Source: Macrostomum lignano (lineage: Eukaryota). Taken from it: a DNA stretch of 64,000 bases. Below, one piece after another: positions 10,207-59,905 of the stretch; positions within the stretch are counted from its first letter, which is position 1; each line of letters opens with the position of its first letter. The notes below the pieces were generated by a model that did no database searches, was not told the origin of the DNA, and saw only the letters and a list, made by a program, of their open reading frames with translations. Made by a program: the position numbers and the translations under genes. The stretch covers positions 124,001 to 188,000 of the forward strand of contig NIVC01000107.1 of the NCBI GenBank assembly GCA_002269645.1, written 5' to 3'.

Positions 10207-13065
10207 TCAATGCTGAGTCCACTGGATGCTCTTCAAATCGACGCCCTCCTGCACCATCTCCCAGAGCGGGCTGAGCTCCCTGAGCCGGCGGACCTGCCTG
10301 ACGCACAAGTCAACAGTGTAGTCCACCTCGGCCTCTGTAGTGAACCGGCCAATCCCGAAGCGGATGCTGGAATGAGCCAGATCTTCATCGGCGCCAATAG
10401 CCCTGAGCACGTAGGACGGCTCCAGGCTGGCCGAGGTGCACGCGCTGCCGGACGACAAGGCGACGTCTTTCAGCGCCATCAGCAGGGATTCGCCTTCGAC
10501 GCAGGCGAAGCTGAGATTAACGCAGCCGGGATAGCAGCTGTCCGGTCGCCGTTAACCACACGTGACTCAGCTGGCTGACTATCCGATCGATTAGGCGTTG
10601 GGACAGCCGGTCAACCCGCTCGGCATCGAAGGCCATCTCTTGGCCGGCCAGCTGGCAGGCGGCGCCGAGGCCGACGGCCAGGAAGCTTGGCACCGTGCCA
10701 GATCGCATCCCGCGCTCCTGGCCGCCGCCGCTCTGCAACGGTTCCAGTCGGACGCGCGGACGCCGACGAACGTAGATAGCGCCGACACCTTTTGGGCCGT
10801 AGAGCTTGTGCCCGGAGATCGACATCAGGTCGATGCAGGCGGCGTTGACGTCGATTGGCATTTTGCCAACTGCCTGAGCAGCGTCTGTGTGAAAGAATAC
10901 GCCGCGGGACCGGCAGAGGGCGCCGATCTTTTCAACAGGCTGACGGACGCCGATTTCATTGTTGACTGTCATGACCGACACCAGGGCGGTGTCGGGGCGG
11001 ATGGCGGACTCTAGGCTGGCCAGGTCTAGTAGACCAGACGGCTTCACTGGCAGGTAAGTTACCTGGCGGTTTGGGTGAATATAGAGATTTATCATAGCTA
11101 ATCTCGGAGGGTGAGAGGATGGATCAATTAGGTCAAAGATATGGCGGCATGATCAAAGATAAGTGAGGGAGGGTTATGGCGGCATGATCAAAGATAAGTG
11201 GTGGAGGGTTATGGCGGCATGATCAAAGATAAGTGGTGGAGGGTTATGGCGGCATGATCAAAGATAAGTGGTGGAGGGTTTTGGCGGTATGATTAAAGAT
11301 AAGTGGGGGAGGGTTATGGCAGCATGATCAAAAATACATGTAAGTGGGAGGGTTATGGCGGCATGATCAAAGATAAGTGGGGAGGGTTATGGCGGCATGA
11401 TCAAAGATAAGTGGTGGAGGGTTTTGGCGGCATGATCAAAGATAAGTGGGGAGGGTTATGGCGGCATGATCAAAGATAAGTGGTGGAGGGTTATGGCAGC
11501 ATGATCAAAAATACATGTAAGTGGGGAGGTTATGGCGGCATGATCAAAGATAAGTGGGGGAGGGTTATGGCGGCATGATCAAAGATAAGTGGGAGGGTTA
11601 TGGCGGCATGATCAAAGATAAGTGGGGAGGGTTATGGCGGCATGATCAAAGATAAGTGGGGAGGGTTATGGCGGCATGATCAAAGATAAGTGGTGGAGGG
11701 TTTTGGCGGCATGATCAAAGATAAGCGAGGAGGGATATGGCGGCATGATCAAAGATCTGGCACCGTAGCGGCCTGGGCAAAGGGGAGGGCTGGCACCGTG
11801 GCGGCCTGGACAAAAGCAAGGAACAATTCGGCAAGCAAACCTCGAATCCCTCGGACTCTAGCGCGCGGCGAGTCGAGCACGCACTTGTGCTCAGTCTGGC
11901 TAGTAATGAGGTGACGCTTCCTTGACTTGTAGAACCTGGCAACGCCTTTAATAGCGATATTATTAGACTCTGTGGCGCCGCTAGTGAACACAATCTCTTT
12001 GGGATCGGCGCCAATGAGCTGGGCCACCTGTGCTCTGGCCTTCTCAACAGCGGTCGGTCTCCCAGCCGTAGGCGTGTGAGCGAGAGTGCGGGTTGCCGAA
12101 CAGGCCGGTACAGTAGGGCAGCATGGCGTCCAGGACACGAGGATCCAGCGGAGTCGTCGCCTATTTTTGAGCAATTCAGAGAAGTGTGGACATCGTGTCG
12201 GTTTTAGTTCACACACTAGGGAGAGCACGAAAAGCGACTCGATCCGGCAAATCAGAGAACAGCAGCCACTATTCCCTTGACCAATCTGAGAACAGCAGCC
12301 GCCATTCCATTGACCAATCGGAGAACAGCAGCCGCTATTCCCTTACCAATCAGAGGACAGCAGCCACTATTCCCTTGACCAATCTGAGAACAGCAGCCGC
12401 CATTCCATTGACAATCGGGAACACAGCGCTATTCCCCTTACCAATCAGAGGACAGCAGCCACTATTCCCTTGACCAATCGGAGAACAGCAGCCGCTATTC
12501 CCTTAACCAATCGGAGAACAGCAGCCGCTATTCCCTTAACCAATCGGAGAACAGCAGCCGCTATTCCCTTGACCAATTGGAGAACAGCAGCCCTAGCCCT
12601 TGACCAATTGGAGAACAGCAGCCGCCATTCCTTGACCAATTGGAAAACAGCAGCCACTATTCCCTTAACCAATCGGAGAACAGCAGCCACTATTCCCTTA
12701 ACCAATCGGAGAACAGCAGCCGCTATTCCCTTGACCAATTGGAGAACAGCAGCCGCCATTCCCTTGACCAATTGGAGAACAGCAGCCGCTGTTTCTTATG
12801 ACCAATCAGAGAATCGAATTATTATACTCTTAATCAATCAGACCCTGTCACATTTTCGACTAATCAGAGAATGACGTATATATTGTATTACGAGTATAAT
12901 AATGAAACAATAAAAGCACACCTGAAGATCCAGATACAGCGGTCGGAATGGAGACTCCCCAGCAGCCGGAGTTGAATCGGTGCTAGCCGGAGCAGCAGTA
13001 GCAGCAGCGGCAGCCTCCGTGCCCAGAAGGCGCTGCCAGTTGCATCTAAGAGCCGACTGGCGCAT
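10207..13065 (-). CDS. NFS1: Mitochondrial cysteine desulfurase; exons ~13065-12922, 12160-11841, 11062-10207; four apparent small deletions
   Basis: The splice gives LYLDLQ|[16 protein letters not shown]. Other motifs: [30 protein letters not shown] (PLP lysine), [21 protein letters not shown] (catalytic Cys) and the terminal WTQH*. GT-AG junctions keep frame. Frameshifts lie near 12050, 11865 and two near 10540-10560. The start codon is uncertain (13065 or upstream in-frame ATGs to 13134). Confidence 0.93.
11130..11750. repeat. ~35-bp minisatellite in NFS1 intron 2
   Basis: ggcggcatgatcaaagataagtggggagggttat units. Confidence 0.95.
12240..12800. repeat. ~33-bp minisatellite in NFS1 intron 1
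   Basis: ccaatcggagaacagcagccgctattcccttga units. Confidence 0.95.
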
Positions 13066-13164: not shown

Positions 13165-13870
13165 TTTCTGGGAGGCTGGCCCAGCAACTGAGGATCTGGG
13201 AGGCTGACCCAGCAACTGAGGATCTGGGAGGCTGGCCCAGCAACTGAGGATCTGGGGGCTGCCCAGCAACTGAGGATCTGGGAGGCTGGCCCAGCAACTG
13301 AGGATCTGGGAGGCTGGCCAGAAACTGAGGATCTGGGAGGCTGGCCAGCAACTGAGGATCTGGGAGGCTGGCCCAGCAACTGAGGATCTGGGAGGCTGGC
13401 CCAGCAACTGAGGATCTGGGAGGCTGGCCAGCAACTGAGGATCTGGAGGCTGGCCAGAACTGAGGATCTGGAGGCTGGCCCAGCAACTGAGGATCTGGGA
13501 GGCTGGCCCAGCAACTGAGGATCTGGGAGGCTGGCCAGCAACTGAGGATCTGGGAGGCTGGCCCAGCAACTGAGGATCTGGGAGGCTGCCCAGCAACTGA
13601 GGATCTGGGAGGCTGGCCCAGCAACTGAGGATCTGGGAGGCTGGCCAGCAACTGAGGATCTGGGAGGCTGGCCCAGCAACTGAGGATCTGGGAGGCTGGC
13701 CAGCAACTGAGGATCTGGGAGGCTGGCCCAGCAACTGAGGATCTGGGAGGCTGGACCAGCAACTGAGGATCTGGAGGCTGGCCCAGCAACTGAGGATCTG
13801 GGAGGCTGGCCCAGCAACTGAGGATCTGGAGGCTGGCCCAGCAACTGAGGATGGGAGGCTGGCCCAGCAG
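13165..13870. repeat. 29-30-bp minisatellite immediately upstream of NFS1
   Basis: ggcccagcaactgaggatctgggaggct units; the same family recurs at 41335-41485. Confidence 0.95.
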
Positions 13871-16567: not shown

Positions 16568-19500
16568 GCTCTGCTCAGTGTAATGTACAGTGCAGGTGTA
16601 CACCTGCACGCGCGCGTGTGATTGGCTGACGCTTTGTCAGACAACCTTTATTGTTGGCCAGCTATATTAAATACAAGCTCTCTGCCTTTGGGGGGGTCTT
16701 ACCCCCGAAGTGGAGTTTTACAGTGGCGACGAGACTGAAACGACCCTGCGCAAATGAGTGCAAGTGCACTAGGGCTTGTCGGCCCATACGAAGAAGGCTC
16801 TGAGCCGTGGCATATGTACCAAGCAAGGTTAGAACAATATTTTGTTGCAATGACGTCACTGAGGAAGCGAAAAAGCGAGCGATTCTGCTGAGTTCATGCG
16901 GCAAGAAAGTCTTCCATCTGGCCTTCAGTCTTCTGTCTCCTGCCACAGCCATCAGCCAAGAGCTACACCGAAATTTGCGAAGCACTGAAGAGCCATTTCG
17001 AGCCTGAGAAGTCCGAGATCGTCCATCGTTACCGGTTCTACACCAGAAATCGCAGGGAAGGTGAGGGCGTCGCGGACTTCGTCGCAGACCTCCGAGACCT
17101 GGCTCGCGACTGCAAGTTCGGCGACAGCCTGACTTCGATGCTTCGCGACAGGCTGGTGCTGGGAATCAACAACGACAGCGCTCAGCGGCGGCTGCTGGCG
17201 GAGCCCGATCTCACTCTAGCGAAGGCATTGAAGCTGGCCCTGGCGCCACGAGTCCGCCGCCAAGGGCTGCCAGCTGGTGTCGGGAGCGAGTAAGCAGATC
17301 CAGTCAGTCAGGAGTCCGTCAGCATTTTCAAGCAACAGCAGAAGTCATCTTCGACGAGGAGGTGCTTCAGGTGCCTGTCAACGAAGCATCTCGCTAATAA
17401 GTGCCCGTTCGCCACCCAGAAGTGCTACAAGTGCTCAAAGACCGGCCACACGGCGGCTGCCTGCAAATTCCAGTCGAAGGACGATAGAAGAGAGGCTCTG
17501 CAGATGCAGGACGGCGAGGAAAAAGACAGCTGCAAGGAGGAAACGGCCCACTCTCTGTACCAGCTGTCCGGCAAGCGGGTGTCGAAGGTGCCGCCAATTA
17601 CAACGACGACGGTGCGCATCAATGGCCGACCTGTTGTCATGGAAGTGGACACCGGAGCCTCCGTGTCCTTGTATCCTCGAAGACCTACAGGACCGTGCTC
17701 AACTCCCAGCCAGCACTGCAGCCTGCGTCGTGCAGCTGCGAACATACTCCGGTGAGAAAGTGCCAATGAAGGCTGCATCTGCCGTTGCTGTGGAAGCTGC
17801 TGAAGCACCGCCCAAGTCACTCAGCCTCCTTGTGGTCGCCGGCTGCGGATCCGACCTGCCTCGGAAGAGACTGGCTGTCCGAGTTGCGGCTCGACTGGAG
17901 ATCAATCAAGCAGGTGGCAGCTGCTCCTGAGGTGTCGCCCAGACTGCAGCAGCTGCTCGACAAGTACAGCGATGTTTTTTCACCTGAGCTAGGAAGTACA
18001 ACGGACCGCCAGTGAGCTTGAATATGAAGCCCGATGCTCAACCTCGCTTTATGAAGGCCAGGAATCTCCCCTTTGCTTTGAAGGACAAGGTGGAGAGCCA
18101 ACTGAACCGCGAGATCGAACAAGGAATCCTGGTGCCCGTGCAGCACTCCGAGTACGCATCGCCGGTGGTGCCAGTGCTCAAGTCGACGGCTCTGTGAGGG
18201 TCTGCGCCGACTTTAAGCAGACCGTCAACCGAACGTGGAGCCCGACTCGTATCCTCTGCCACGGATCGAAGAGCTGTTCGCGAAGCTGACTGGTGGCGGC
18301 TCTTTACTAAGCTCGACTTGTCGCAGGCGTACATGCAGCTGCCACTCGATGAGGCCTCCCAGGAAGTCTGCACGATCAATACGCACAAAGGGCTGCTTCG
18401 GTACACGCGGCTGCCCTTCGGTGTCTCGCCAGCGGTCGGGATTTTTCAGCGCCGGATGGACTGCTTGCTGCAAGGAATCACCAGCACCGCCTGCTTCATC
18501 GATGACCTCATCATCACCGGGAAGGGCGACAGCAGTCATCTGAACTCCCTGGAGCAGGTTCTGGAGAAGCTGAGCCAGAGTGGCCTCCGGTGCAAACTGG
18601 AGAAGTGCCAGTTCATGCAGACGAGCATCAGTTATCTCGGTCACCGCATCGATGCCGACGGCCTGCACCCGATCAAAGACAAGGTCGAGGCAATTGTCAG
18701 CGCTCCAGCTCCCAAGGACGCAACTCAGCTGCGCAGCTTCCTAGGCATGGTGAACTACTATGGCAAATTCCTGCCTAATTTGTCTCAAATCCTGGCACCG
18801 CTGCACCTGCTGCTGCGTGAGCAACACCGCTGGAACTGGGGCGCTGCTCAGAACTCCGCTTTCGAGAAGTGCAAGGCCCTGCTGTCTTCGGCTCCGGTAT
18901 TGGCGCACTTTGACCCGAGCGAAGACCTGCTGCTCGAGTGCGACGCGTCCCCTTACGGTCTGGGTGCGGTCATCAGCCACAGGATCGATGGAGCTGTCCG
19001 GCCTGTGGCCTTTGCCTCGCGTACGTTGCACGACGCTGAGAAAAACTACTCGCAGCTCGAGAAGGAAGCCCTCGCTGTAGTGTTTGCGGTCAAGAAGTTC
19101 AACGCGTACCTGTTCGGCCGCCCATTTCTGCTGGTGAGTGACCACAAACCTCTGCTTGGATTGCTTGCTGAGAACAAGGCCGTGCCGGCCCTGGCATCTG
19201 GAGGAATTCAGAGGTGGGCTCTGCTGCTGTCTGGCTATAACTACCGCATGGTTCACCGAGCCGGAGCCTCACTGCTATGCGCCGATGCCCTGAGTCGCCT
19301 GCCGCTGCCCGGCAAGCCGGCGACGGTCCCGAAGCTGGCAGAACTGGTCATGCTGATGGACCACCTGGACGATGGACCTGTCACGGCAGCTCAGATACGC
19401 GGCCTGACTCGAAGGGACCCCACACTAGCCCGAGCTCTGCACTTCACGCAAATCGGCTGGCCAGAGCGGGTCAGTGACGATCTGCTGCCATACTCCAAGA

Positions 19501-21116
19501 GAGCGGCTGAGCTCAGTGTGCAAGACGGCTGCCTCCTGTGGGGCGCTCGAGTGGTGGTCCCGGTTGGAGCGCGAGCTGCACTGCTCCAGGTGCTGCATCA
19601 AGGTCATGCGGGGGCGTCACGCATGAAGACGTTAGCCCGAGGTTATTTCTGGTGGCCAGGATTAGACTCGGAGATCGAAAACCTGGCCAAGGCCTGCTCC
19701 GACTGTCAGGAGTTGCAGAACGCCCCGGCGCCTTCGCCAATGTTGTCGTGGCCGTGGCCTGACCGACCGTGGTCTCGAGTGCATATCGACTATGCGGGTC
19801 CGGTGTCTGGCAAGATGCTGCTGGTTGTCGTCGATGCCCATTCAAAGTGGCTGGATGTGCATGTGGTGACGTCAGCGACCTCAGCTGTCACCATCCAGAA
19901 ACTCCGCTCCAGCTTCGCGACGCACGGGTTGCCAGATGTGCTGGTGTCGGACAATGGGCCCAACTTGGTCAGCGAGGAGATGTCCGACTTTCTCCAGAAG
20001 AACGGCATTCAGCACGTGCGCGTTGCTCCCTACCATCCGGCGTCCAACGGCCTGGCGGAACGAGCTGTCCAGACGCTGAAGCGGTCCCTGGAGAAGCAGC
20101 GCGAAGACTCCTTGGAGGATAAGGTCGCCCGGTTCCTGCTGAGCTACCGGGTCACTCCGCATGCGACAACTGGTGTGGCTCCCTGCGAACTCCTGATGGG
20201 ACGGCACCTGTGCACGTTGCTAGATCGAGCTCGGCCAGACCTGGGAGCAAGAGCACAGCGTAAGCAAAATCAGCAAAAAGAGCACCACGACTGCAAAGCT
20301 CGGTTTAGGACCTTCGAGACTGGAGACGCTGTACTGGCCAGAGACTTTGGAGCCAACGGAGGTCGGTGGAAGCCGGCGCGAGTTGTCGGTGCCACCGGTC
20401 CGACCTCCTACCTGTGCGGATTCGATGGCGACGACCGAGTGGTGCGGCGGCACGTTGACCATGTCCGCGGTGGTCCTGAGCAGCCGCGGCCTACAGGAGC
20501 TGGCGTGACAGACGGTGCTACCGACGCCAAGGCCGCACCTGAGCCGGAAGCTGCGATGCCGGCCGTGGACGAGCCGCCAAACCTGGCTGCTCCTGGAGAC
20601 CCTGAGATCGACGGGTCTCTGCGCCGATCGTCGCGAGTTCGACGTCCCCCGGAGCGCCTGAGCTACGGGTGACGTCATCTGTGAAAGAGACTGTTTTGAA
20701 TTACTGTAGTATTCGGACGTTTAATTTTGGATTTTGAACTTTGTTATGGTTATGGTTTATTTTCCTTTATTTTGTTGTGTCGTTGCTTTCCTATCTGGCG
20801 TTTGCGTAGTTTTGGTGCTGGTTAATTAATTATTATTTATTATTAAGTTATTTTTTTGAGTTATTGTTCCTCACTAAAATGTGTTGCGCTAATGTATTCT
20901 CTTGCGATCCCTGATCCCCATGTAGATGGGGAGGGATGTGGTAGCGTGGGTCTGCTCAGTGGCTCTGCTCAGTGTAATGTACAGTGCAGGTGTACACCTG
21001 CACGCGTGCGTGTGATTGGCTGACGCTTTGTCAGACAACCTTTATTGTTGGCCAGCTATATTAAATACAAGCTCTCTGCCTTTGGGGGGTCTTACCCCCG
21101 AAGTGGAGTTTTTACA
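16568..21116 (+). mobile_element. Ty3/Gypsy LTR retrotransposon (Mag-like): LTR-PBS-gag-pro-RT-RH-IN-PPT-LTR
   Basis: 5' LTR 16568-16722 (start lies in the gap). PBS tggcgacgag at 16724-16733 is complementary to the tRNA-Ser(GCU) 3' end. Gag from ATG 16754 (WHMYQARLEQYFVA) has two CCHC knuckles near 17360-17465. Protease VDTGAS is near 17645. RT (FIDD), RNase H (CDASPYGLGAV) and integrase (HQGH, HIDY, SDNG, NGLAER) lie in 18318-20672. PPT is at 20925-20936 and the 3' LTR is 20937-21116 (TG...CA). Gag-pro carries several frameshifts. Confidence 0.95.
18318..20672 (+). CDS. Gypsy pol (RT C-terminal part, RNase H, integrase)
   Basis: 784-aa ORF with YTRLPFGVSPAVGIFQR, FIDD, FLGMVNYY, YSQLEKEAL, HIDYAGP and SNGLAERAVQT. 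Confidence 0.95.
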   Translation: MSQAYMQLPLDEASQEVCTINTHKGLLRYTRLPFGVSPAVGIFQRRMDCLLQGITSTACFIDDLIITGKGDSSHLNSLEQVLEKLSQSGLRCKLEKCQFMQTSISYLGHRIDADGLHPIKDKVEAIVSAPAPKDATQLRSFLGMVNYYGKFLPNLSQILAPLHLLLREQHRWNWGAAQNSAFEKCKALLSSAPVLAHFDPSEDLLLECDASPYGLGAVISHRIDGAVRPVAFASRTLHDAEKNYSQLEKEALAVVFAVKKFNAYLFGRPFLLVSDHKPLLGLLAENKAVPALASGGIQRWALLLSGYNYRMVHRAGASLLCADALSRLPLPGKPATVPKLAELVMLMDHLDDGPVTAAQIRGLTRRDPTLARALHFTQIGWPERVSDDLLPYSKRAAELSVQDGCLLWGARVVVPVGARAALLQVLHQGHAGASRMKTLARGYFWWPGLDSEIENLAKACSDCQELQNAPAPSPMLSWPWPDRPWSRVHIDYAGPVSGKMLLVVVDAHSKWLDVHVVTSATSAVTIQKLRSSFATHGLPDVLVSDNGPNLVSEEMSDFLQKNGIQHVRVAPYHPASNGLAERAVQTLKRSLEKQREDSLEDKVARFLLSYRVTPHATTGVAPCELLMGRHLCTLLDRARPDLGARAQRKQNQQKEHHDCKARFRTFETGDAVLARDFGANGGRWKPARVVGATGPTSYLCGFDGDDRVVRRHVDHVRGGPEQPRPTGAGVTDGATDAKAAPEPEAAMPAVDEPPNLAAPGDPEIDGSLRRSSRVRRPPERLSYG

Positions 21117-25720
<4,604 letters not shown>

Positions 25721-41159: not shown

Positions 41160-44100
41160 TCAGTTACCGTCGGTGTCCTTGATGGTCTCCTGCTGCTCAA
41201 ACACCGGGTAGGCCTCCATCACCTGGGCCCAGGTAAGCCTCTCCTGCACCAGCTGCTGCACTATGCCGGGGATTTTCTCCACCTGGATGGGATAAATGGG
41301 ATTTGCGTGAGAGTGAGATTCGCTGCACCTGCCGGGTGGCCCAGCAACTGGGGATCTGGGAGGCTGGCCCAGCAACTGAGGATCTGGGAGGCTGGCCCAG
41401 CAACTGACACTGGGAGGCTGGCCTAGCAACTGAGGAGCTGGGAGGCTGGCCTAGCAACTGAAGATCTGGGAGGCTGGCCTAGCAGCAGACACCAGCAGAC
41501 AGAATCCGTACCTCAACCCGAACCTGCCGCATGGAGTCGCGCTCCCGCAGCGTGGCGGTCGCCGGCGTCTTGTTGATGCTGTCGAAGTCGATGGTGACGC
41601 CGTAGGGGATGGCGATCTGGTCGGTGCGCGCGTACCGCTTGCCGATGGAGACGCTGCTGTCGTCAATGCGGTGGGACAGGCCGGCCTGGGTGAGCGCCTG
41701 GGACATGGCGGTGGCCATCTCGCGCAGCTTGGGGTTGTTGCTGAGCTGCAGCACGCTGCACTTGTAGGGGGCGATGACGGGCGGCAGGCTGAGGTAGGTC
41801 CGGGCCTCGTCTCCCTCCCGGGCCCGGAAGCTGTGCTCGAAGATGACGTACATGATGCGGCCGATGCCGAAGCTGGGCTCGATGACGCTGGGCACGAACT
41901 CAAGGCGGTGGACGGTGCGCTCAGTGCGGCGGACGGACACCATGTCCGGCGTCAGCTTGCGCTCGCTGCCGCCGATCTCGCGAGACGCCGAGCCGAGCGA
42001 CTCCAGCTCGGTGGCCAGGGAGTTCAGATCCGCCTCCTCCAGGCTGCTCAGGTACTGGGTCACGTGACTGCGGGGGAGAGGCTAAACTGACTAACTGACT
42101 GCTACTCTATACTGACTACTACTCAACTGACTACTACTTTAAACTGACTACTGCTCTATACTGACTACTACTCTATACTGACTACTGCTCAACTGACTAC
42201 TACTCAACTGACTGCTACTCTATACTGACTACTACTCTATACTGACTACTACTCAACTGACTACTATTTTAAACTGACTACTGCTCTATACTGACTACTA
42301 CTCTATACTGACTACTGCTCAACTGACTACTACTCAACTGACTGCTACTCTATACTGACTACTGCTCTATACTGACTACTACTCTATACTGACTACTGCT
42401 CAACTGACTACTACTCAACTGACTGCTACTCTATACTGACTACTACTCTATACTGACTACTACTCTATACTGACTACTGCTCTATACTGACTACTACTCT
42501 ATACTGACTACTGCTCAACTGACTACTACTCAACTGACTGCTACTCTATACTGACTACTACTCTATACTGACTACTGCTCTATACTGACTACTACTCTAT
42601 ACTGACTACTACTCAACTGACTACTGCTTTAAACTGACTATTATTTTATACAGACTACTACTCATCCTCAGTCATGTACACTCCCTGTAAATTCTATAAA
42701 TTCGATTGAACACATGACCACAGGGCACGCAACCTACACGGCATCGGCTTTGAAAGTCCTGCCAACAACGCCTTTGTTGATGACGGCTTCGTTGGCGACC
42801 ACCACCTGCGGCTCCGCCAGCATCTTCTCGGCCACCAGCTGGGCGCCGCAGGCTTTGGAGTGCTGCGTCAGGTCGTAGGCGGAGCGGTCGGCGCAGCCAA
42901 CGCACTCGATCCAGCCGTAGGAGGTCAGGCACTCGGCATCCCAGCAGTCGCAGGCGTAGTGCGCCATCTCGTTGCTGAGGTGCTGGCGGAACCGCAGCCG
43001 CTGGCGGTCCACGCCGCAGCGCACCATGAACAGGAAGATGCGGGCCATGAAGTAGGCCAGGGTCTGGTTGGCGATCACGCCGGCCGACACCGCCTGCGGC
43101 AGCGTGAGGAGGAGGGGCGACTGGTTGGTTAGAGCTCAGGCTCAGAGATACTAGCTATGAAATCTATAGACCTAATCTACAAGTTCCAATTGATATCTAA
43201 TTCCCATAAATCCGGACATCTAATCTCCATAAAATCGGACATCTAATCTCCATAAATCCGGACATCTAACTCCCATAAATCCGGACATCTAATCCCCATA
43301 AATCTGGACATCTAATCCCTATTAATCCAGACATCTAATCCCCATAAATCCGGACATCTAATCCCCAGGAATCCCGACATCTAATCCCCAGAAATCCGGA
43401 CATCAAATCCTCAGAAATCCGGACATCTAATGCCAATAAATCCGGACATCTAATCCTCATCAATCCGGACATCTAATGCCAATAAATCCGGACATCTAGT
43501 CCCAATAAATCCGGACATCTAATGCCAATAAATCCGGACATCTAGTCCCAATAAATCCGGACATCTAAAGCCAATAAATCTGGACATCTAATCCTCATCA
43601 ATCGGGACATCTAATTCCCATAAAACCGGACATCTAATGCCAATAAATCCGGACATCTAGTCCCAATAAATCCGGACATCTAATCCCCATAAATCCGGAC
43701 ATCTAAAGCCAATAAATCTGGACACCTAATCCTCATCAATCCGGACATCTAATTCCCATAAATCCGGACATCTAATCTCCAGAAATCCGGACATCTGGCC
43801 TGGAACTCCAAAGTCCGGGTCAGCTCCGGTCCAGCACAAACCTCTCCTAGCGGCTTCTCAGTCGCATCCAGGCCGGCCATCTGGTCCTTGGCCGAGTAGA
43901 GCGGCAGGCTGAGACCGGCCACGCTGGCGAACTTCGGATGAGACTTGTCGGCGGGGTCCAAGAAGTGCTCGATCTCCGCCATGGTGAACTCTCGAACTCT
44001 GCGGAGGTCAGAGTGATGTGAGCGTTAGATTTCTGTATGGACAAATTTTCCATAACAACTCATTTTACAGTTTGAATATGAGTTCCCGTTCCCAGACTCC

Positions 44101-47060
44101 CAAATTCCCAATTTCAGACTTCGGAATCTTAATCCTACTCCAGAATTCTGGTCACTAACTCTGAAATCCCGATCTCAGACTAGAGAATTCTGATCCCAAA
44201 CTCCTGAATCCCGATCCCAGACTCCAGAATTCCGATCTAAGACTCCTGAATCCCGATCCCAAACTCCAGAATCCCGATCCCAGACTCCAGAATTCCGATC
44301 CCAGACTCCAGAATCCCGATCCCAGACTCCAGAATTCCGATCCCAGACTCCAGAATCCCGATCCCAGACTCCAGAATTCCGATCCCAGACTCCAGAATTC
44401 CGATCCCAGACTCCAGAATCCCGATCCCAGACTCCAGAATTCCGATCCCAGACTCCAGAATCCCGATCCCAGACTCCAGAATTCCGATCCCAGACTCCAG
44501 AATTCCGATCCCAGACTCCAGAATTCCGATCTAAGACTCTAGACTTCCGATCTAAGACTCCTGAATCCCAATCCCAAACTCCGGAATCTCGATCCCAAAC
44601 TACAGAATCCGGATCCCAAACTCCGGAATCCCGATCCCAGACTCCGGAATCTCGATCCCAAACTACAGAATCCCGATCCCAGACTCTAGAATCCCGATCC
44701 CAAACTCTAGAATCCCGATCCCAAACTCCAGAATCCCTGATCCCAGACTCCGAAATCCCGATCCCAGAATCCCGATCCCAGACTCCGAAATTCCGATCCC
44801 AGACTCCGAAATTCCGATCCCAGACTCCAGAATCCCGATCCCAGACTCCAGAATCCCGATCCTAGACTCCAGAATCCCTGATTCCAGACTCCGAAATTCC
44901 GATCCCAGACTCCGAAATTCCGATCCCAGACTCCAGAATCCCAATCCCAGACTCCAGAATCCCGATCCTAGACTCCAGAATCCCTGATCCCACACTACGA
45001 AATCCCGATCCCAGACTCCAGAATCCCGATCCCAGACCCCAAAATCCCGATCTCTGACTCTTAAATCCCGATCTGGGATTCGGACATCAGAATCTCTGAA
45101 ATCCTGATCTCAGACTACAGAATCCTGATCCCAGACTTCGGAATCCTGGTCTCAGACTCTTAAATCCTGATCCCAAACTCCGAAATCCCACCTGAGCAGG
45201 CCAGCCCGCGGGCTGATCTCATTCCGGAAGCTGTTGCCAATCTGGGCGGCGGCGAACGGCAGCCGGCCCTGGTTGAACTCCAGCAACCGTTTAAAATTGA
45301 CGAAGATGCCCTGGGCGGTCTCCGGCCGCAGATAGCCTTTGATGTTGCCGGCGGGCCCGATGGACACCTGGAACATCAGGTTGAACTGCTGCGGCTCCGA
45401 GATCTCGTTGCCGGACTGAGGCGACTTGATGCCAAACTTCACAATAACCTCCTGCAGGCCGGCGCCGTCCAGGTTGTCGAGGCTGTTCAGGATTCTGCGC
45501 GCCTCATCGCGCCGGTCCTGCGGCGTCTTGGGATCGGCCTCCAGCTTCTCCAGGAACTGCTTGACCACGTGGTCGGCCCGGAAGCACTCGCCGGTTTTCA
45601 GGTCCTTCACCTTGTAGTCGGCGAACCTCTCCACGTGGCCGGAGGCCTTCAGCACCGGCTCCGGGGTGAGCATGGAGCAGTCCATCTCGAGCATCTGCTC
45701 CTCCAGCACGAAGAAGTTTCGCCACTCCTGCAGCAGGTTCGCCTTCACCGCGCAGCCCATCGGACCGAAGTCGTACAGGCCCTGCACACCTGCGGCAGGG
45801 GAGCAAGTGGGGAGCATGTTGCAGAGTCTTGATCAGCATCTGAGATTCTCAAGACAATCCTGGATCTCCAGGGCTAAGCTGCCACCATCCCAGATCCTCA
45901 ATGCTGAGCTGCCACCATTCCAGATCCTCAATGCTGAGCTGCCACCATCCCAGATCCTCAATGCTGAGCTTAAACCATCCCAGATCCTCAATGCTGAGCT
46001 GCCACCATCCCAGATCCTCAATGCTGAGCTGCCACCATCCCAGATCCTCAATGCTGAGCTGCTACCATTCCAGATCCTCAATGCTGAGCTGCCACCATCC
46101 CAGATCCTCAATGCTGAGCTGCCACCATCCCAGATCCTCAATGCTGAGCTGCCACCATTCCAGATCCTCAATGCTGAGCTGCCACCATCCCAGATCCTCA
46201 ATGCTGAGCTGCCACCATTCTAGATCCTCAATGCTGAGCTGCCACCATTCCAGATCCTCAATGCTGAGCTGCCACCATCCCAGATCCTCAATGCTGAGCT
46301 GCCACCATTCCAGATCCTCAATGCTGAGCTGCCACCATCCCAGATCCTCAATGCTGAGCTTAAACCATCCCAGATCCTCAATGCTGAGCTGCCACCATCC
46401 CAGATCCTCAATGCTGAGCTGCCACCATCCCAGATCCTCAATGCTGAGCTGCTACCATTCCAGATCCTCAATGCTGAGCTGCCACCATCCCAGATCCTCA
46501 ATGCTGAGCTGCCACCATTCCAGATCCTCAATGCTGAGCTGCCACCATCCCAGATCCTCAATGCTGAGCTGCCACCATTCTAGATCCTCAATGCTGAGCT
46601 GCCACCATTCCAGATCCTCAATGCTGAGCTGCCACCATTCTAGATCCTCAATGCTGAGCTGCCACCATTCCAGATCCTCAATGCTGAGCTGCCACCATTC
46701 CAGATCCTCAATGCTGAGCTGCCACCATTCCAGATCCTCAATGCTGAGCTGCCACCATCCCAGATCCTCAATGCTGAGCTGCTACCATTCCAGATCCTCA
46801 ATGCTGAGCTGCCACCATCCCAGATCCCCAATGCTGAGCTGCCACCATTCCAGATCCTCAATGCTGAGCTGCCACCATCCCAGATCCTCAATGCTGAGCT
46901 GCCACCATCCCAGATCCCCAATTCTAAGCTGTAAAATGCAGTCACTTGCACCACAAACCATTCAGTAATGACACTCACCCCCATAGATAGCAAATGATTG
47001 GTCATAGAAAAATCGCTGCTTTAGCAGAGTCTCCAGCTTGTTGCGATCAAAGCCCTCCAT
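41160..47060 (-). CDS. GARS1: Glycyl-tRNA synthetase; exons 47060-46979, 45789-45192, 43998-43842, 43093-42738, 42067-41512, 41282-41160 (1872 nt, 623 aa, frame intact)
   Basis: Motifs [14 protein letters not shown]|[75 protein letters not shown] and [11 protein letters not shown]. All five introns are GT-AG and the exon phases sum correctly. Confidence 0.96.
41335..41485. repeat. 29-30-bp minisatellite in the last GARS intron (same family as 13165-13870)
   Basis: ggcccagcaactgaggatctgggaggct units. Confidence 0.9.
42085..42660. repeat. 16-bp minisatellite in a GARS intron
   Basis: ctactctatactgact units. Confidence 0.95.
43200..43800. repeat. 22-bp minisatellite in a GARS intron
   Basis: taaatccggacatctaatcccca-type units. 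Confidence 0.95.
44090..45190. repeat. 21-bp minisatellite in a GARS intron, reaching the donor site
   Basis: cccagactccagaatcccgat units. Confidence 0.95.
45875..46925. repeat. 30-bp minisatellite filling GARS intron 1 (~35 copies)
   Basis: cagatcctcaatgctgagctgccaccatcc units. Confidence 0.97.
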
Positions 47061-50142: not shown

Positions 50143-53100
50143 ATGGCAGCCGAGTCTTCAGCAGCGGAGTCTTCAGACAGTTCGGAAGCTTCAGAAGCAG
50201 ATCCCAACACAGAAAACTTTCAACGGCGATTGTTCGCAAAATGTATAACTTTTATATATTTTTGCTACCGCAGTTTCTGATATTCATTTCATACCTAACA
50301 CACATCCACTTTGCAGGCCCAGCTCTAAACAAGATTAAGGATAAATTCCGAAAACTGAATATGGAGCAGAAGATGCTGGTGTACCTGCTATGCAAAAATC
50401 CGAAGGAATCAACGCACCTTGAACTCAAAGAAGCGTTTCCATCCAGCAAAGATAAAGTTTTACGCTCTGCATGCTCAATGTACAATGGGCTTGACAAAGA
50501 CATGCGAGAGCCGAGTCTCACAGACAGCCAGAAAGACTCCTCGTACATTGTTTATGGCGTCGAAGAGGACGATAAGAGCAAGCAGAGGGTCTTCAAACCG
50601 TTGAAAAAAGAAACAAAAGACAGCAATATTCAAGATTGGTTTCGCAACTGCACTCGGCCCATGGTTCGCGTTACCTGGCACCTGGTGAAATTTGACAGAA
50701 TGTTCACTTTCCCTATTGCTGATCGAATGGCGGAAATTCCACCAGGAACTTACGCATTGCTGGAAGTTCACACAGGAAGTGTTGGTCCCACAAGATACAA
50801 AAGCACTGAAAAATCGAGTACGGGTATTTGGCATTTGTACTCGAGAACAGACGCCAGCAATTTACCAGAGGAGAAGATGGACGACAATTTCAAAGAGGAG
50901 CTGAACAGACAGTTTGAGAACAGGTTTGACCATAGTGCACTCAATCCAATCGCTGATGCTCTTCAGGAATACCAGGAGTCGTTTCGAGTGCTGCTACTGA
51001 CAGATTTTTTTGATGTCAGAAATGAAAAAGAAAATTTGATCCGGGCTCTGACAAGAGGCAAATGGAACATTATCGTCGACTTCGATAAAAAGAGCAGAAA
51101 AGCTGGAGGGCATCACCAGTTCATCACTCAGGAAATGGAAGCTCAAGGTCGAAAGTTCTCACTTCATACTCTTCGTGACTCAAACACTTCAGATGTTCCT
51201 GAAGAAGAATTGAGTCAGTGCAAGCAGGGAAAGATGTTTGTACATTCAGGCCGACGGATGCAGTGAACGAGGGCCGGGGGGAATCAAAGGTCCAAAAAAT
51301 GGAGAAAAGCTAAAACTCCTTTTGCAATCAAAAGTTTTTGTTCCTGTTTTAGAAAGCGATGGCCCCCAAAAACGAGTTTTTTGCTTGACACTTGTAGCTG
51401 GTACAAACAATTCACCAGCTGAACTTGATCAAATCCCTCAATTGGTGAAAGACTCCGTTGAAGCTGCTAGTGGAGACTCAAGCAAGTTTTATTCCCTAGC
51501 TGTGTGTACCAGTGAGTCTGCTAGAAGCAATGCTTTACCCAATGCCAACACAGGTCAATTCGAGACGTACACGGTACCTGCCAATCAACTCAGTTGCGCT
51601 CTCAACTCTCTGTATCCTAAGAAAGATCAGTCGTTGACTGAAGAACTTCCGGGGTGTTCCGGAAAGTTCTCCATGCCTTGTAGCAGCTATGATTTCGTTG
51701 AGTTCTTCCATATTACAGCTGGACGGCCCGAAAAGCCTTTGCCGGACCTGTCTGAGGATGATTTTAATGACAGGAGACAGCAATTTCTGGCAGGTAATGA
51801 GCTGACTGCAGAAATGCTGTACTTGCATGATGAAAACCTTTTTAACAAGAGGATGTTCGTCCAGCGAAATCGAATTAATGGTCTTGAAGAAGAAGTCAAC
51901 AGCGCACTTGAATTCAGCAGCAAAAAGTCTTTTGAAAATTACGACATGAAACAGCGTTCGATAATCCGACTTATGCATCAGCCGGTCTCTGGAGCGACGA
52001 CCATTGCGAATGTCGTCATGTGGAAATTCCATAAAGAATATCCCTGCATCAAAGTGAAGGAAGCAAAAGGTGAAGACATTGTTGGCAAAGAACTGAGGAA
52101 ACTGATTTCGGATGTTTACATAAAGGCACAGAAGCCTGTTCTTGTCCTGTTTGACAATGTGGCTGATTATTTGGCCATAACTCGCTTCATGAGTGAATTG
52201 GCCAATTTTCATGCAGCACCAAAACTTGTCGTGCTGCTAGTGGAACGAGTAGTCAGACAGGAAGACTCCGGCACTGGATCAGGAAGAACTCAAATTCTAA
52301 AAATGGAGCTTTCTCCTGAGGAAGAAAAACGCTTTGCAAAGCTGTATGAGGAAGCTGGTGGAGACATGAAGTTAATTAAAAAGAGTGAAACGGATATTCG
52401 CGAGATCTTGAATGACTGCGAGAACAAAAAGACACCATTTCTGTTTGGTGTACTGCACTGCCTAGACTATTTAAAAGTTAACGAGATTGTTACTGTTTTG
52501 CTAGAAAATAGCACTCAAACTACCAAGGATTTGCTATATTTTGCTTCCCTCTCAAAGCACTACATTAACTATCCAGTTAATCTCGCTATCGCCGCACACT
52601 TGCTTGACCTATCGCCCACTCAGGATGAACCCACTGAAGTGCTTAAGAAGCTGGGACTTCATCAGCATCTTCTAATTCTGCAAAAGGTTAAAGGTGCGTA
52701 CAACTTCTCGCCGGTTGTTTGTGTTGCTGAAAAAATTATGGAAATCTGCAGCACCAAGCAAAGCGATGACGAAGGTGAGTGTGAGGACAACGGCCGTTCC
52801 AAAGAGCAGAGGCAAGTTGTCTGGTTTGTCGACCAACTCTGCGGGATGGCCGACACAATTGGATTACAGAGTTGCCTGGGCAACCTCGTCACACAGCTGA
52901 CAACGTTTAAACGGGATTCTAATGATCAGTTTAGCCACTTAATGAAATCGCTGTATGAATGTAGCAAGGATGACAAGGATGATGAGCAAAGTTTAGATAC
53001 TTTAAAAGATCTTATACACAAACTGGCGAGCTCATTTCCTTCACAGAAAGGCCACATTCTGATACACTTGGCTCGCCTGCTCACCTACAAAGAAAAATCA

Positions 53101-54495
53101 TATGACGAATCACTTATCCTGGTTCGAACAGTTCTTGAGCTTGAAACATCAGAGACTTTTTCGGATACTAGAGTCACTGACGCAACGCTGCTCGGTATGT
53201 CTTCGCACCTCCTCAATTGCAAAATCGATCAGCTTAGTAACGAATCGAATCCTATTGAGTTTAAACAAGTAATCAGCTACGCTTTGAACAGTATTGAGCT
53301 ATCAAAGAGATCGCAAGCAAAAACAGGATATTTACACGAAAGCGGCGAAGTAGTGCACAAAGCACATCCGTTTATTGGTGAGATTCAGGCTCAACGACGG
53401 CTGCTAAAAGCATTCTTCGATCTGGAATGCCATGGAGATGGCAGAGAATTTATCCGAAAAATTCAGGACTTACCGGCAGTCTTGGAAATTAACGGCGATA
53501 TTTTACAGAAAATTTTCGCTCTCGAAAGCATGTACAATCGAGGGCAGTTGGAGCTCGGATCGTATTCTTCAAAAGAGCAACTTACATTGGACCGCACAAA
53601 GAAGGAGTTCATGCAGAGATATTCACACTGCTCGGTGAAAGAGCTGCTGGAGGTCAGTGTAAAGACCGGCTTCCAGTTTGCATGGGTGGCCTTTGATTAT
53701 TATATGTCGCTGCCTTGCATCCGGGCACCTGACGATACCGAAAGTGATCTGACTAACGAAGAAGAGAATTCTGGAGCGAAATCACGTGTAACAATGTGGG
53801 ATCGAACTTGGAATGTGAGCAATCTTCCGAGAGAAAAGAAGAAAACACTTCTGAGTAATTTATTGAACTGTCCATCTAAAATGGCGAAGAACTACTTTGA
53901 GATATGCGTCCTGCTCATTCTTTTTAAGGGGCCAACTGATTTTGATCGCGCACAGAAGGTTACGCTTGAGTGGCGCAAGCGATTTGAGTCTGACCATCTC
54001 GCCCACTTCATGCACGGCACCCTCATGTTGGTGAAATACCTTAAATTACCAGTTGGCGACATGGCCACGAATGCCAAAGAGAGATTGCTGAGGAACGCAA
54101 CGGATTCTCTATCGATTTGCAAAGAAATGATGACTTGTAAGAACCGCCAGCACAAAAAACCAGGATACTATCGTCTTCGTCTTTTTATCACAAGCTCTGG
54201 AGAGCCTCTCAACATTATCAAGTACATGCCGAAGAAGAATACACACGAAGAAGAGAAGGAGCACATTCGGAAGAATAACGGAAGGAGGTTTACCGGCATC
54301 GTCGATGAAGACAGAAGGTTAATTTGCTTCGAATTGAATTCCTGGCGTCTGAATCTACCATCGCAAGATGAGAACAACGCGGAAAAAATGGACGACATGG
54401 TTCGGAAGAAAAGCCGAGTGTCCTTCTTTCTTGCGATGGCGTACAGTGGTCTCACTCCGATAGACATTAAGGAGGAGCCGCATCTGAACAATTGA
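50143..54495 (+). CDS. SAM-less SAMD9/SAMD9L-like protein (AlbA_2/Schlafen nuclease, SIR2-like region, STAND P-loop NTPase, helical/TPR region, OB-like C-terminus); exon 50143-50242, intron 50243-50316, exon 50317-54495 with one +1 indel near 51240; ~1,425 aa
   Basis: Motifs ESTHLELK, LRSACSMYN and YIVYGVEED (Schlafen/AlbA_2); KWNIIVDFDKKS (SAMD9 W.AVL.FD..S); IIRLMHQPVSGATTIANVVMWKFHKEYPC (SAMD9 Walker A region); PVLVLFDN (Walker B); and the terminal RVSFFLAMAYSGLTPIDI (SAMD9 VSFYLGFSI.GP.AYDI-like). Confidence 0.8.
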
Positions 54496-56639: not shown

Positions 56640-57363
56640 CAAGGTGGTGCCAATGATCTAATAGCAGAACTGAGACGCATCTTATGGGACTGGAGGGGTG
56701 AGCCCATAGCTTCACTTGTGTGGTCCAGCAGGTAAAACGTTTACTGCGCCAGTTGAAGAATCCACATGGCCAGGGGAGTTGTTAGTTGCTACTAACCCAA
56801 GCCTTATGGACTAAAGACACCGCCAACCCAATATTAGTGGAATCTGGGACGGTGCTAGGACCGAGTCCACCCAGGCCACCACCCAGCAGACAAGTCCCGG
56901 GAGTGCGCGAAAAAAGAAAAAATCTTAGGATATTACTAAAAGCGGTCCGAGAGCGGGGAAACCCAGGAGTCTCGGAAATGGCTTAGTTAGTGACTTAGTT
57001 TTGGAGCGAGTCTGGAAGGCTTGTTTCCGAGGGCGAGTCTCCTGTCAGGCAGTGCCTACACTGCCTAGGATACCTACAGGGCTGCAAGCCACAAGGGTAT
57101 CACCTATCCAGCTCTATATTGGAGGCCAGGTCAAGGGATCAGGAAGGGGCACAAGGAGCAAGAGGACCCGGACTCAGCCGGTATCCCCGATTCGGGACGA
57201 ACATCCAACCCAGGACTCTAGTCCACTGTCAGGATGAGAGCCGAGACACAAGGGCAGGGAGACAGCCATAGGAGCCGGCAGATGGACCAAGGACAGAGAA
57301 GTAGTGAACTGAGTGTAACTGAGTATTCTTACAGCGGGCAGGGAAAATACCCGATCAAGTCGC
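56640..57363. mobile_element. LTR-like GC-balanced segment (partly duplicated at 58597-58870)
   Basis: Sharp compositional edge ending ...aagtcgca; no TSD or matching terminus found. Confidence 0.3.
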
Positions 57364-59905
57364 ATTAAGTATTAAAAGCTTGAGTCTTGTCTCGTAAACT
57401 AAAAAAATCTTTTTTTTTCATTTTATGCTTCAGCTTAACTTCAGACCAGCTTTGTATGAAATTATTCTGATGCTGCAACATCCAGTATGATATACATGTA
57501 CATGCTATTTGTAAAAATCGTCCTTAACTGAGCTGATGATATAAAAATTATGTGTAAAAAATTCTTAAATCGCAATTTGTAATGAGACCGACAGCTATTA
57601 TTGATAAATCTGCAGGTGAAAATTACAGGTAGATAAATGATTGCCTCTTTTTGACTGTAATATTGTAAAGTTTCTTATGCAGAACGAATGGGTGTGAAAA
57701 ATTATAAACTAAAATGATTAAAATATCAAAGCCTTAAGAAAAGTTTAGAAAGTGGACCGCTGTGCTGATTTTTCCACATACTTAAATGGTACGCCAGATG
57801 AAGACGGTTGCTAAAGGCGGAACAGGTGCGTAATTGACTCAGTGATGATACTTAATTCAATATTCTTTAATTTGGTGTTGGTGAGCCGAGACTCCAGATT
57901 AGCAGGCAGTTTTCTTTCTGAACGGGAGTCACGAGAGCAAATCAGCTGTACACCGCGCAGAACTGCATCCGCTCGGGCCCTGCGCTCAGCTGAGTCTGAA
58001 GTGATGAAGTGCAGTTTGGGTTGATGGTTAAACAGCGGGGCTGCAATTGGATGATCGAAGCTTATCTATAAAAAAGTTTGTCTCCTTTTCTCAATCCCAC
58101 GTCTCTGCTACCAGTTCCCAACCAAAAGCAGCAAATGCTCAGTTCAGATGCAATTCAATCAACTCACGCTGTGCTCGTAGATGCAGCAGGCGGGCACCCA
58201 GGCCAGCAGGGACAGCAGCACCACTATGAACACCAGGTTGCAGCGCAGAATGTCACCTTGCGATTGGGTTTAATTAATTGTGCCAATTATCGGCTTTCAA
58301 TTACCTCATTTTCAATCACTTAATCACTATTCACTTCACTCCCGTCGAACCGCCCCCCTCACGAGCGACTCTCCGCTGATTCGACCGANNNNNNNNNNNN
58401 NNNNNNNNNNNNNNNNNNNNNNNNNNNNNNNNNNNNNNNNNNNNNNNNNNNNNNNNNNNNNNNNNNNNNNNNNNNNNNNNNNNNNNNNNNNNNNNNNNNN
58501 NNNNNNNNNNNNNNNNNNNNNNNNNNNNNNNNNNNNNNNNNNNNNNNNNNNNNNNNNNNNNNNNNNNNNNNNNNNNNNNNNNNNNNNNNNNNNNNGGATA
58601 CCTACAGGGCTGCAAGCCACAAGGGTTTCACCTATCCAGCTCTATATTGGAGGCCAGGCCAAGGGATCAGGAAGGGGCACAAGGAGCAAGAGGACCCGGA
58701 CTCAGCCGGTATCCCCGATTCGGGACGAACAACCAACCCAGGACTCTAGTCCACTGTCAGGATGAGAGCCGACACACAAGCAGCAGTAGGACCAAGATGA
58801 CAGAGCAGTAGTGAACTGAGTGTAACTGATTTTTCTTACAGCGGGCGGGGAAAATACCCGATCAAGTCGCATTAAGTATTGAAAGCTTGAATCTTGTCTC
58901 GTATACTAAAAAAATCGTTTTTTTTCATTTTATGCTTCAGCTTAACTTCAGACCAGCTTTGTATGAAATTATTCTGATGCTGCAACATCAAGTATGATAT
59001 ACATGTACATGCTATTTGTAAAAATCGTCCTTAACTGAGCTGATGATATAAAAATTATGTGTGAAAAATTCTAAGATCGCAAACTTGTAATGAGACCGAC
59101 AGCTATTATTGATAAATCTGCAGGTGAAAATTACAGGTAGATAAATGATTTACAGGTAGATAAATGATTGCCTCTTTTTGACTGTAATATTGTAAAGTTT
59201 CTTATGCAGAACAAATGGGTGTGGAAAATTATAAACTAAAATGATTAAAATATCAAAGCCTTAAGAAAAGTTTAGAAAGTGGACCGCTGTGCTGATTTTT
59301 CCACATACTTAAATGGTACGCCAGATGAAGACGGTTGCTAAAGGCGGAACAGGTGCGTAATTGACTCAGTGATGATACTTAATTCAATATTCTTTAATTT
59401 GGTGTTGGTAAGCCGAGACTCCAGATTAGCAGGCAGTTTTCTTTCTGAATGGGAGTCACGATAGCAAATCAGCTGTACACCGGCAGAACTGCATCCGCTC
59501 GGGCCCTGCGGCTCAGCTGAGTCTGAAGTGATGAAGTGCAGTTTGGGTTGATGGTTAAACAGCGGGGCTGCAATTGGATGATCGAAAAAAAGTTTGTCTC
59601 CTTTTCTCAATCCCACGTCTTCTGCTACCAGTTCCCAACCAAAAGCAGCAAATGCTCAGTTCAGATGCAATTCAATCAACTCACGCTGTGCTCGTAGATG
59701 CAGCAGGCGGGCACCCAGGCCAGCAGGGACAGCAGCACCACTATGAACACCAGGTTGCAGCGCAGAATGTCACCTTGCGATTGGGTTTAATTAATTGTGC
59801 CAATTATCGGCTTTCAATTACCTCATTTTCAATCACTTAATCACTATTCACTTCACTCCCGTCGAACCGCCCCCTCACCGAGCGACTCGCCGCTGATTCG
59901 ACCGA
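57068..59905. repeat. ~1.3-kb near-identical tandem duplication across the gap (57068-58388 vs 58597-59905)
   Basis: Both copies start ggatacctacagggctgcaagccacaaggg and run to ccgctgattcgaccga; they differ by scattered substitutions and small indels. Confidence 0.9.

Follow-up and report, generated by a model that had tools for sequence, protein, structure and literature searches.

Our analysis of a 64,000-nucleotide stretch of the Macrostomum lignano genome (assembly GCA_002269645.1, Mlig_3_7; contig NIVC01000107.1, positions 124,001 to 188,000; hereafter, the window) identifies a gene on the plus strand whose product very likely belongs to the SAMD9 family, whose members are large proteins of innate immunity. 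Its domain order is AlbA_2, SIR2-like, P-loop NTPase, helical/TPR, and OB, without a SAM domain. We consider it probable that this SAMD9-family gene exists in two syntenic copies, the one in the window with a single frameshift and its sister intact; a mechanism is proposed by analogy. A preliminary description of the same DNA had proposed the SAMD9/SAMD9L domain order, which was borne out by a Pfam match to AlbA_2, by profile alignments, and by structural matches to SAMD9. The flatworm gene is thus a divergent new member of a known family and not a new kind of system.

The gene model follows the one annotated for the sister copy, P0003 (PAA63023.1, BOX15_Mlig007074g1), in which a long second exon runs from the end of the intron to the stop codon at 54495. 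Window positions are used throughout, and the features are listed below with the evidence for each (ORF, open reading frame; AF2, AlphaFold2; pLDDT, predicted local distance difference test score).

50143..54495, plus strand: SAMD9-like gene, window copy, two exons (ORF list and sister-copy gene model)
50143..50242, plus strand: exon 1, 100 nt, ATG and 33-residue acidic Ser-rich leader (sister-copy model; no SAM by Pfam)
50243..50316, plus strand: 74-nt GT..AG intron (same length and position in sister copy P0003)
50406..50858, plus strand: AlbA_2 (Schlafen-type) domain (Pfam PF04326, 32 bits against a cutoff of 25.3)
50958..51732, plus strand: SIR2-like domain, bounds approximate, which holds the frameshift (profile alignment to human SAMD9)
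51754..52272, plus strand: STAND-type P-loop NTPase core (phmmer to SAMD9 37ib_A, E=2e-4; profile, E=8e-20; pLDDT ~90)
52273..52767, plus strand: helical and winged-helix-like lobe after the NTPase core (AF2 model; SAMD9 alignments)
52795..54138, plus strand: long alpha-helical TPR-like region (AF2 helices 522-967; Foldseek)
54160..54477, plus strand: C-terminal small beta-barrel, OB-like (AF2 strands 980-1079, pLDDT ~90)

All seven motifs named in the preliminary description lie where it had placed them: ESTHLELK (50406-50429, with Glu codons at 50406 and 50421), SACSMYN (50466-50486), YIVYGVEED (50544-50570), KWNIIVDFD (51060-51086), the Walker A variant HQPVSGATT (51976-52002), the Walker B LVLFDN (52141-52158), and the C-terminal VSFFLAMAYSG (54418-54450), where the family consensus is V-x-F-x-L-G-F-S-Y-x-G. 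The acidic Ser-rich leader had been described as standing in place of SAM. The leader exon is present, but it is no peculiarity of this protein, given that members lacking SAM are found in invertebrates and bacteria (PMC5445408, PMC12680541). Pfam detected no SAM domain, and the leader is 33 residues long. Since SAM is limited to vertebrates within the family, its absence here is not special (PMC5445408).

Profile and structure comparisons with SAMD9

For the NTPase region, a direct phmmer search of PDB sequences retrieved human SAMD9 alone, in an alignment that covers the P-loop. Relatives were collected by an exhaustive HMMER search of 1.8 billion representative sequences, which recovered 102 of them, only four with E<1e-30; a word-indexed protein search was nearly blind to the family (2, 1, and then 0 matches versus the 102 by HMMER). 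Searched against the PDB, a profile of the four closest relatives matched SAMD9 only (E=8e-20), and a profile of 35 relatives produced one continuous alignment to SAMD9 residues ~209 to 1587 (E=5e-100), which is nearly all of the chain without SAM. An AF2 model of the C-terminal 1085 residues (pLDDT, 82.8; predicted template modeling score, 0.70) gave the same answer: among PDB structures, Foldseek placed seven chains at the top, all of them human SAMD9 solved by cryo-electron microscopy. The best of these, 9zjr, aligned with E=6.6e-27 over 1161 columns; the six highest-ranked alignments covered 1141 to 1171 columns, and the last of the seven covered 598. Below the SAMD9 chains, the best match was 22 orders of magnitude weaker (6e-5), leaving human SAMD9 as the sole full-length structural match. 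Within this model, the TPR-like region matched SAMD9 and, more weakly, IFIT1 and TPR proteins.

Strands and helices alternate in structure models of the SIR2-like part, where the motif W-x2-[IV]-x-DFD-x-S-x3-G reads KWNIIVDFDKKSRKAGG and is aligned to human SAMD9 KWFAVLEFDPESNINGV in the full-length profile alignment. Two aspartates of this part, D255 and D257, are invariant across relatives (residue numbers given for the flatworm protein, namely E31, E36, K38, D46, N57, G81, E84, D255, and D257, are those of the first ORF). In the NTPase core, the P-loop H-Q-P-V-S-G-A-T-T compares with a family signature of H-x-P-G-x-G-G-[ST]-T, such that the His, the invariant Gly, and the Thr-Thr pair are retained and the lysine and first Gly are missing. 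Ala at the lysine position is shared with six other relatives, and Val in place of the first Gly is found only in M. lignano proteins; as judged by alignment, this P-loop strays further from the consensus than that of other members. The Walker B strand is followed by Asn rather than a second acid. Family P-loops lack the lysine generally (PMC5445408), and in SAMD9L, where His replaces the P-loop Lys, nucleotide is bound and hydrolysis was not seen (bioRxiv 10.64898/2026.02.01.703102). Given that the flatworm P-loop has neither the lysine nor the first Gly, it may bind nucleotide rather than hydrolyze it.

A candidate AlbA_2 nuclease

The N-terminal domain contains the motifs E31-x4-E36-L-K38, N57, and G81-V-E-E84. 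Human SAMD9 numbering was recovered via PDB alignments (E184...E196-F-K198, K214, E218, R221, N228, and G238-V-K-D241) and agrees with the residues reported to be essential in SAMD9 (PMC12027330). By motif context, E36-L-K38 corresponds to human E196-F-K198, E84 to D241, and E31 to E184 with a shorter spacing, so that three of the four acidic positions required in human SAMD9 have clear counterparts. A candidate for the fourth, E218, is D46, which is nearly invariant in close relatives. All five of the aligned relatives whose sequence spans the region retain the pattern E-x4-[ED]-[FL]-K (the sixth, P0004, begins downstream), and the acid three residues past the conserved Gly is kept in 5/6 relatives, having been lost in P0006 (G-I-H-H). 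The Pfam SLFN_AlbA_2 model scored 28.8 bits with the paralog P0005, 54 bits with the relative P0052, and 23.5 bits, just under the cutoff, with the paralog P0002. By its motifs, the domain is a candidate nuclease.

A number of results weigh against the view that this locus encodes a SAMD9-type protein with a working nuclease. The window copy is broken, and the product of its annotated 940-aa ORF would be without AlbA_2. The intact sister protein P0003, searched as a whole, gave no Pfam match, and no residue could be assigned as the equivalent of human E218. AF2 modeled the N-terminal 316 residues poorly (pLDDT, 61), and a Foldseek search of the PDB with the result found no match below E=0.08. 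An HMM search revealed no similarity of the AlbA_2 domain to the human SAMD9 tRNase domain, and hhalign against the tRNase region of human SAMD9, P0088, and P0036 gave a probability of 0.2% or less. Even for the well-modeled C-terminal part, the Foldseek TM-score to SAMD9 was low (0.33; root mean square deviation, 31 Å), which means that the agreement extends to the order and fold of the domains and not to how they are oriented relative to one another. Neither PADLOC nor NCBIfam models matched the protein, and a six-sequence AlbA_2 profile run against PDB sequences did not retrieve SAMD9 or Schlafen proteins. The structural check proposed in the preliminary description, AlphaFold plus Foldseek, therefore recovered SAMD9 with the C-terminal 1085 residues and nothing with the N-terminal part. 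The profile searches that it proposed recovered both AlbA_2 (by Pfam) and the SAMD9-type NTPase (by profiles) and did not find the link to the human tRNase domain. What remains of the "intact-looking" nuclease is the motif agreement at three of four acids; the copy itself is frameshifted, its N-terminal model is poor, and E218 is unmapped.

We considered that the N-terminal domain might bind nucleic acid without nuclease action, which would make the protein a sensor or scaffold rather than a translation-arresting RNase. AlbA_2 was originally described as a DNA/RNA-binding domain (PMC5445408), and the Pfam score barely exceeds the cutoff here and falls under it in P0002; the unmapped fourth acid and the loss of the third in P0006 point in the same direction. 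We nonetheless think this unlikely, given that the E-x4-[ED]-[FL]-K pattern is universal among the five relatives spanning the region, that all but one of six keep the acid after the conserved Gly, that the acid spacing is of the Schlafen/Avs9 type (PMC12680541), and that a HEPN RNase domain occupies the same position in relatives of the same clade (see below).

One frameshift and an intact sister copy

In the window copy, the long exon is split between two reading frames, with an ORF of 341 codons overlapping one of 1085 codons, and the single frameshift between them is sited within the SIR2-like domain. The window copy is not intact: its coding sequence, unlike that expected of a family member, is interrupted. 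The preliminary description of a ~1,425-aa protein encoded almost wholly in one exon was correct with respect to the exon model, which is that of P0003, but the frame is broken once. The sister copy P0003, found in the 90% cluster of P0001 (the public gene call at the window locus), has 1423 aa and an open frame throughout. It is encoded on another contig (NIVC01001880.1; locus L003), where the same genes, a class II tRNA synthetase and a Reprolysin, flank it, and the two loci are colinear with 92 to 100% identity. Splicing around the frame change was also weighed as an explanation and rejected, since it would remove residues conserved in P0003 and in the paralog P0002.

The two copies are 96.6% identical over the gene and differ in length at four places, of which three keep the frame and one shifts it. 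Their divergence is limited to a block of ~2.3 kb (roughly 50.75 to 53.1 kb), which is 5 to 9% divergent and contains ~150 differences; the window and L003 are identical or near-identical at 46.9 to 50.7 kb and 53.2 to 58.4 kb, and beyond ~46.9 to 58.4 kb the outer flanks are 92 to 98% identical. Gene conversion or mixing of assembly consensus sequences could cause such a mosaic pattern. Over codons 201 to 980, in the divergent block, synonymous divergence (dS) is 0.14 and nonsynonymous divergence (dN) is 0.046. The resulting dN/dS of 0.33 indicates that selection since the separation of the copies has been purifying. M. lignano is a recent hidden polyploid (PMC5704211), and given this history, the two loci are most simply taken to be homeologous or duplicated, with patches of homogenization.

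Whether the frame change is real bears directly on the status of the window copy. We lean toward a real change, which would make this copy a very young pseudogene or a truncated gene, because the ~9 kb of identical flank contains hardly any gap columns and because the frame-changing difference is something other than a one-base slip in a homopolymer. It is quite possible, if not our preference, that the frameshift is instead an assembly (consensus) error, in which case the window copy would really be an intact 1,42x-aa gene and M. lignano would have two working copies. The assembly was made from PacBio data with Canu (PMC5730564), and several features speak for this reading: in the P0003 frame the window copy contains zero stop codons, this is the sole frame-changing difference, the remaining three indels are in frame, dN/dS is 0.33, and a gene model is present at the locus. 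The near absence of gaps in the identical flank, however, makes the consensus error rate look low, and the usual long-read error, a single base within a homopolymer, is not what is seen.

The public gene call P0001 is only 940 aa long and begins past the frame break. GenBank models for this assembly come from RNA-seq transcripts in which TransDecoder called the ORFs (PMC5730564); this explains the short call and suggests transcription of the locus or of its twin. The gene identifiers of the locus were absent from the literature searched and from the supplements of the genome paper.

Paralogs and relatives

The M. lignano genome contains at least three diverged paralogs, with 33 to 44% identity. 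One of these, P0002 (1577 aa; L002 10001-15127, contig NIVC01000104.1), is already labeled "SAMD9-like" in UniRef and has an exon boundary before AlbA_2 at the place matching the intron of the window gene. Its leader differs, in that a hydrophobic stretch, LTIAIAILVGVLVLVWFCW, is followed by a long low-complexity region; the hydrophobic stretch could be a membrane anchor. A third paralog, represented by P0005/P0104 (UniRef A0A1I8I1Y7 and A0A1I8GHJ7), is 44% identical over the AlbA_2/SIR2-like part. Its UniRef name, "Piwi domain-containing protein," probably stems from a chimeric gene model in an older assembly.

Relationships were evaluated with a rough neighbor-joining tree (Kimura distances, 449 NTPase-core columns, 100 bootstrap replicates). 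Two M. lignano paralogs form a clade with P0004, P0006, P0007, P0008, and P0012 in 100/100 replicates, separate from a vertebrate-plus-mollusc type and from bacterial-looking groups, one member of which comes from a Smithella metagenome-assembled genome (MAG). The split isolating this flatworm-type clade is the only well-supported one; the grouping of vertebrates with molluscs has support of 45/100, and the bivalve sequence P0023 falls with the vertebrate type rather than with the flatworm clade. P0004 and P0007 are on eukaryotic contigs. The closest relatives outside the flatworm, P0007 and P0008, have a HEPN_DZIP3 domain in place of AlbA_2, which fits a swappable slot for an RNase effector. 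Next to P0007 (L005 3001-7293) is a retroelement-like gene that encodes RVT_1 and HTH_animal domains. When only flatworm-type sequences were used to build an AlbA_2 profile, the profile matched the N-termini of a group of ~1,225-aa proteins, one member of which is bacterial (the Smithella MAG), and did not match the vertebrate type. Together, the clade placement, the HEPN swap, and the AlbA_2 resemblance are suggestive. They could mean that SAMD9/Avs9-like STAND proteins have a second animal lineage, deeply separated from the first, which consists of the flatworm genes with P0004, P0006, P0007, P0008, and P0012 and has either AlbA_2 or HEPN as the effector, a proposal that we regard as speculative.

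The gene also stands out from its surroundings in codon usage. GC content at third codon positions (GC3) is 0.47 to 0.49 in the SAMD9-like gene versus 0.74 to 0.95 in neighboring host exons, a stronger contrast than the A/T-richer codons noted in the preliminary description. The comparators were Pfam-matched exons of the neighboring tRNA synthetase, Reprolysin, and aminotransferase genes. ORFs at 18 to 24 kb had been candidates for housekeeping comparators and were dropped, as Pfam identified them as retrotransposon genes. This low GC3, together with the single long exon and the match of the Macrostomum-only AlbA_2 profile to the ~1,225-aa group and not to the vertebrate type, raises the question of a foreign origin, be it by way of a mobile element or virus or by recent horizontal transfer from bacteria. 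We find this very improbable. The gene has a spliceosomal intron at a position common to its paralogs, of which the genome holds at least three that are already well diverged, and the same host genes flank both homeologous loci. No inverted or long terminal repeats were found around the gene, its nearest relatives are on eukaryotic contigs, and the BFVD viral structure library yielded only generic AAA+/TPR matches and no viral structural counterpart. In vertebrate SAMD9/SAMD9L, moreover, the coding sequence is likewise essentially one exon.

Surroundings of the gene in the window

Both neighbors are on the minus strand: a class II aminoacyl-tRNA synthetase gene upstream of the SAMD9-like gene and a gene for a Reprolysin-type metalloprotease downstream of it. 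Between the SAMD9-like and Reprolysin genes, a segment of ~1.3 kb is tandemly duplicated (57068-58388 and 58596-59905; 96 to 100% identical) and is apparently single-copy in L003. Dense tandem-repeat arrays with periods of 17, 21, 23, 28, and 30 nt lie within or around the tRNA synthetase gene (41337-46931), including a 30-nt array at 45873-46931 with 35 copies and a 95% match. Another array (13167-13869) matches tandem repeats at L003 361-1157, with ~88 to 90% identity. At 10517-11095, the minus strand carries an aminotransferase exon (class V; Pfam, E=9e-44). The retrotransposon genes mentioned above are two large high-GC ORFs, at 18318-20672 (plus strand) and 21939-24242 (minus strand); by Pfam, one of the two encodes reverse transcriptase, RNase H, and integrase (long terminal repeat type), and the other encodes endonuclease and reverse transcriptase (long interspersed nuclear element type). 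Scans of the window for tRNA genes and Rfam families were empty.

Discussion

The core architecture of SAMD9 is known from echinoderms, molluscs, hemichordates, brachiopods, cnidarians, and bacteria (Mekhedov et al. 2017, PMC5445408), and the flatworm gene can be compared with several of these groups. Human SAMD9 and SAMD9L (PDB 9zjr, 37ht, and 7ksp) share with the flatworm protein the domain order, the lysine-less P-loop, the His upstream of the P-loop, and the DFD of the SIR2-like domain. Identity is ~14%, however, and the flatworm protein is without SAM or the flexible linker. Its AlbA_2 domain has a short E-x4-E-x-K where human SAMD9 has E184..E196-F-K198, and it carries a 14-residue insert ahead of the G-V-x-E strand. 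The P-loop is V-S-G-A-T-T rather than G-C-G-G-T-T, and the Walker B ends in D-N rather than D-D.

A study from 2025 named the bacterial form without SAM Avs9 and demonstrated that its toxicity depends on AlbA_2 (PMC12680541). Avs9 has the same five domains as the flatworm protein and no SAM, the first two acids are equally spaced (E14/D19 in Avs9; PMC12680541), and the match of the flatworm AlbA_2 profile to the N-termini of the ~1,225-aa group is a likeness on the Avs9 side. Unlike Avs9, whose genes lie in prokaryotic genomes and often adjoin defense systems, the flatworm gene is in an animal contig with animal neighbors, has a spliceosomal intron and a leader exon, and has no PADLOC match, and its NTPase core belongs to the separate eukaryotic clade with 100% support. 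The invertebrate SAMD9 members of Mollusca, Cnidaria, Echinodermata, Brachiopoda, and Hemichordata resemble it in lacking SAM and in having variable N-termini, but Death, CARD, or Pyrin domains, all absent from the flatworm protein, are common in them (PMC5445408). Platyhelminthes is not among the phyla listed for these members (PMC5445408), and the literature that we searched contained no paper linking SAMD9 with Macrostomum or Platyhelminthes. Schlafen nucleases (SLFN11/12/13/14) have in common with the flatworm protein the SLFN_AlbA_2 domain and the E-x4-E ... acid arrangement. They have their own SLFN-box/SWADL and, in long forms, a helicase, and they lack the SIR2-like, STAND NTPase, TPR, and OB parts. 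The likeness is thus confined to AlbA_2, and the rest of the flatworm protein is of the SAMD9 type.

Cleavage of tRNA-Phe, translation arrest, and virus restriction have been reported for human and rabbit SAMD9 (PMC12027330). By analogy, the flatworm protein might work as a latent switch that leads to RNA cleavage by AlbA_2 and then to translation arrest, a model that we hold with close to even confidence. At rest, the intact protein would be closed and nucleotide bound, kept so by its SIR2-like, NTPase, and OB parts. Opening or oligomerization would follow once the C-terminal half senses a signal, upon which AlbA_2 would cut RNA, possibly tRNA, and arrest translation in the infected or stressed cell. 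An antiviral role of the flatworm protein would follow from the same analogy.

In summary, M. lignano carries members of a medically important family that has antiviral and antiproliferative functions and whose evolution is debated, with descent from Avs9 and convergence with Avs9 as the two views. The flatworm members widen the known range of the SAMD9 family among animals, and they combine an NTPase core of a eukaryotic clade with an AlbA_2 domain resembling that of the ~1,225-aa group. As a laboratory model whose genome is annotated, M. lignano should make descriptive follow-up easy. If the flatworm-type genes do represent a second animal lineage, this would bear on whether the whole architecture of SAMD9 descends from Avs9 or arose by convergence with it and would place that question in a model animal that is ready for transgenesis.

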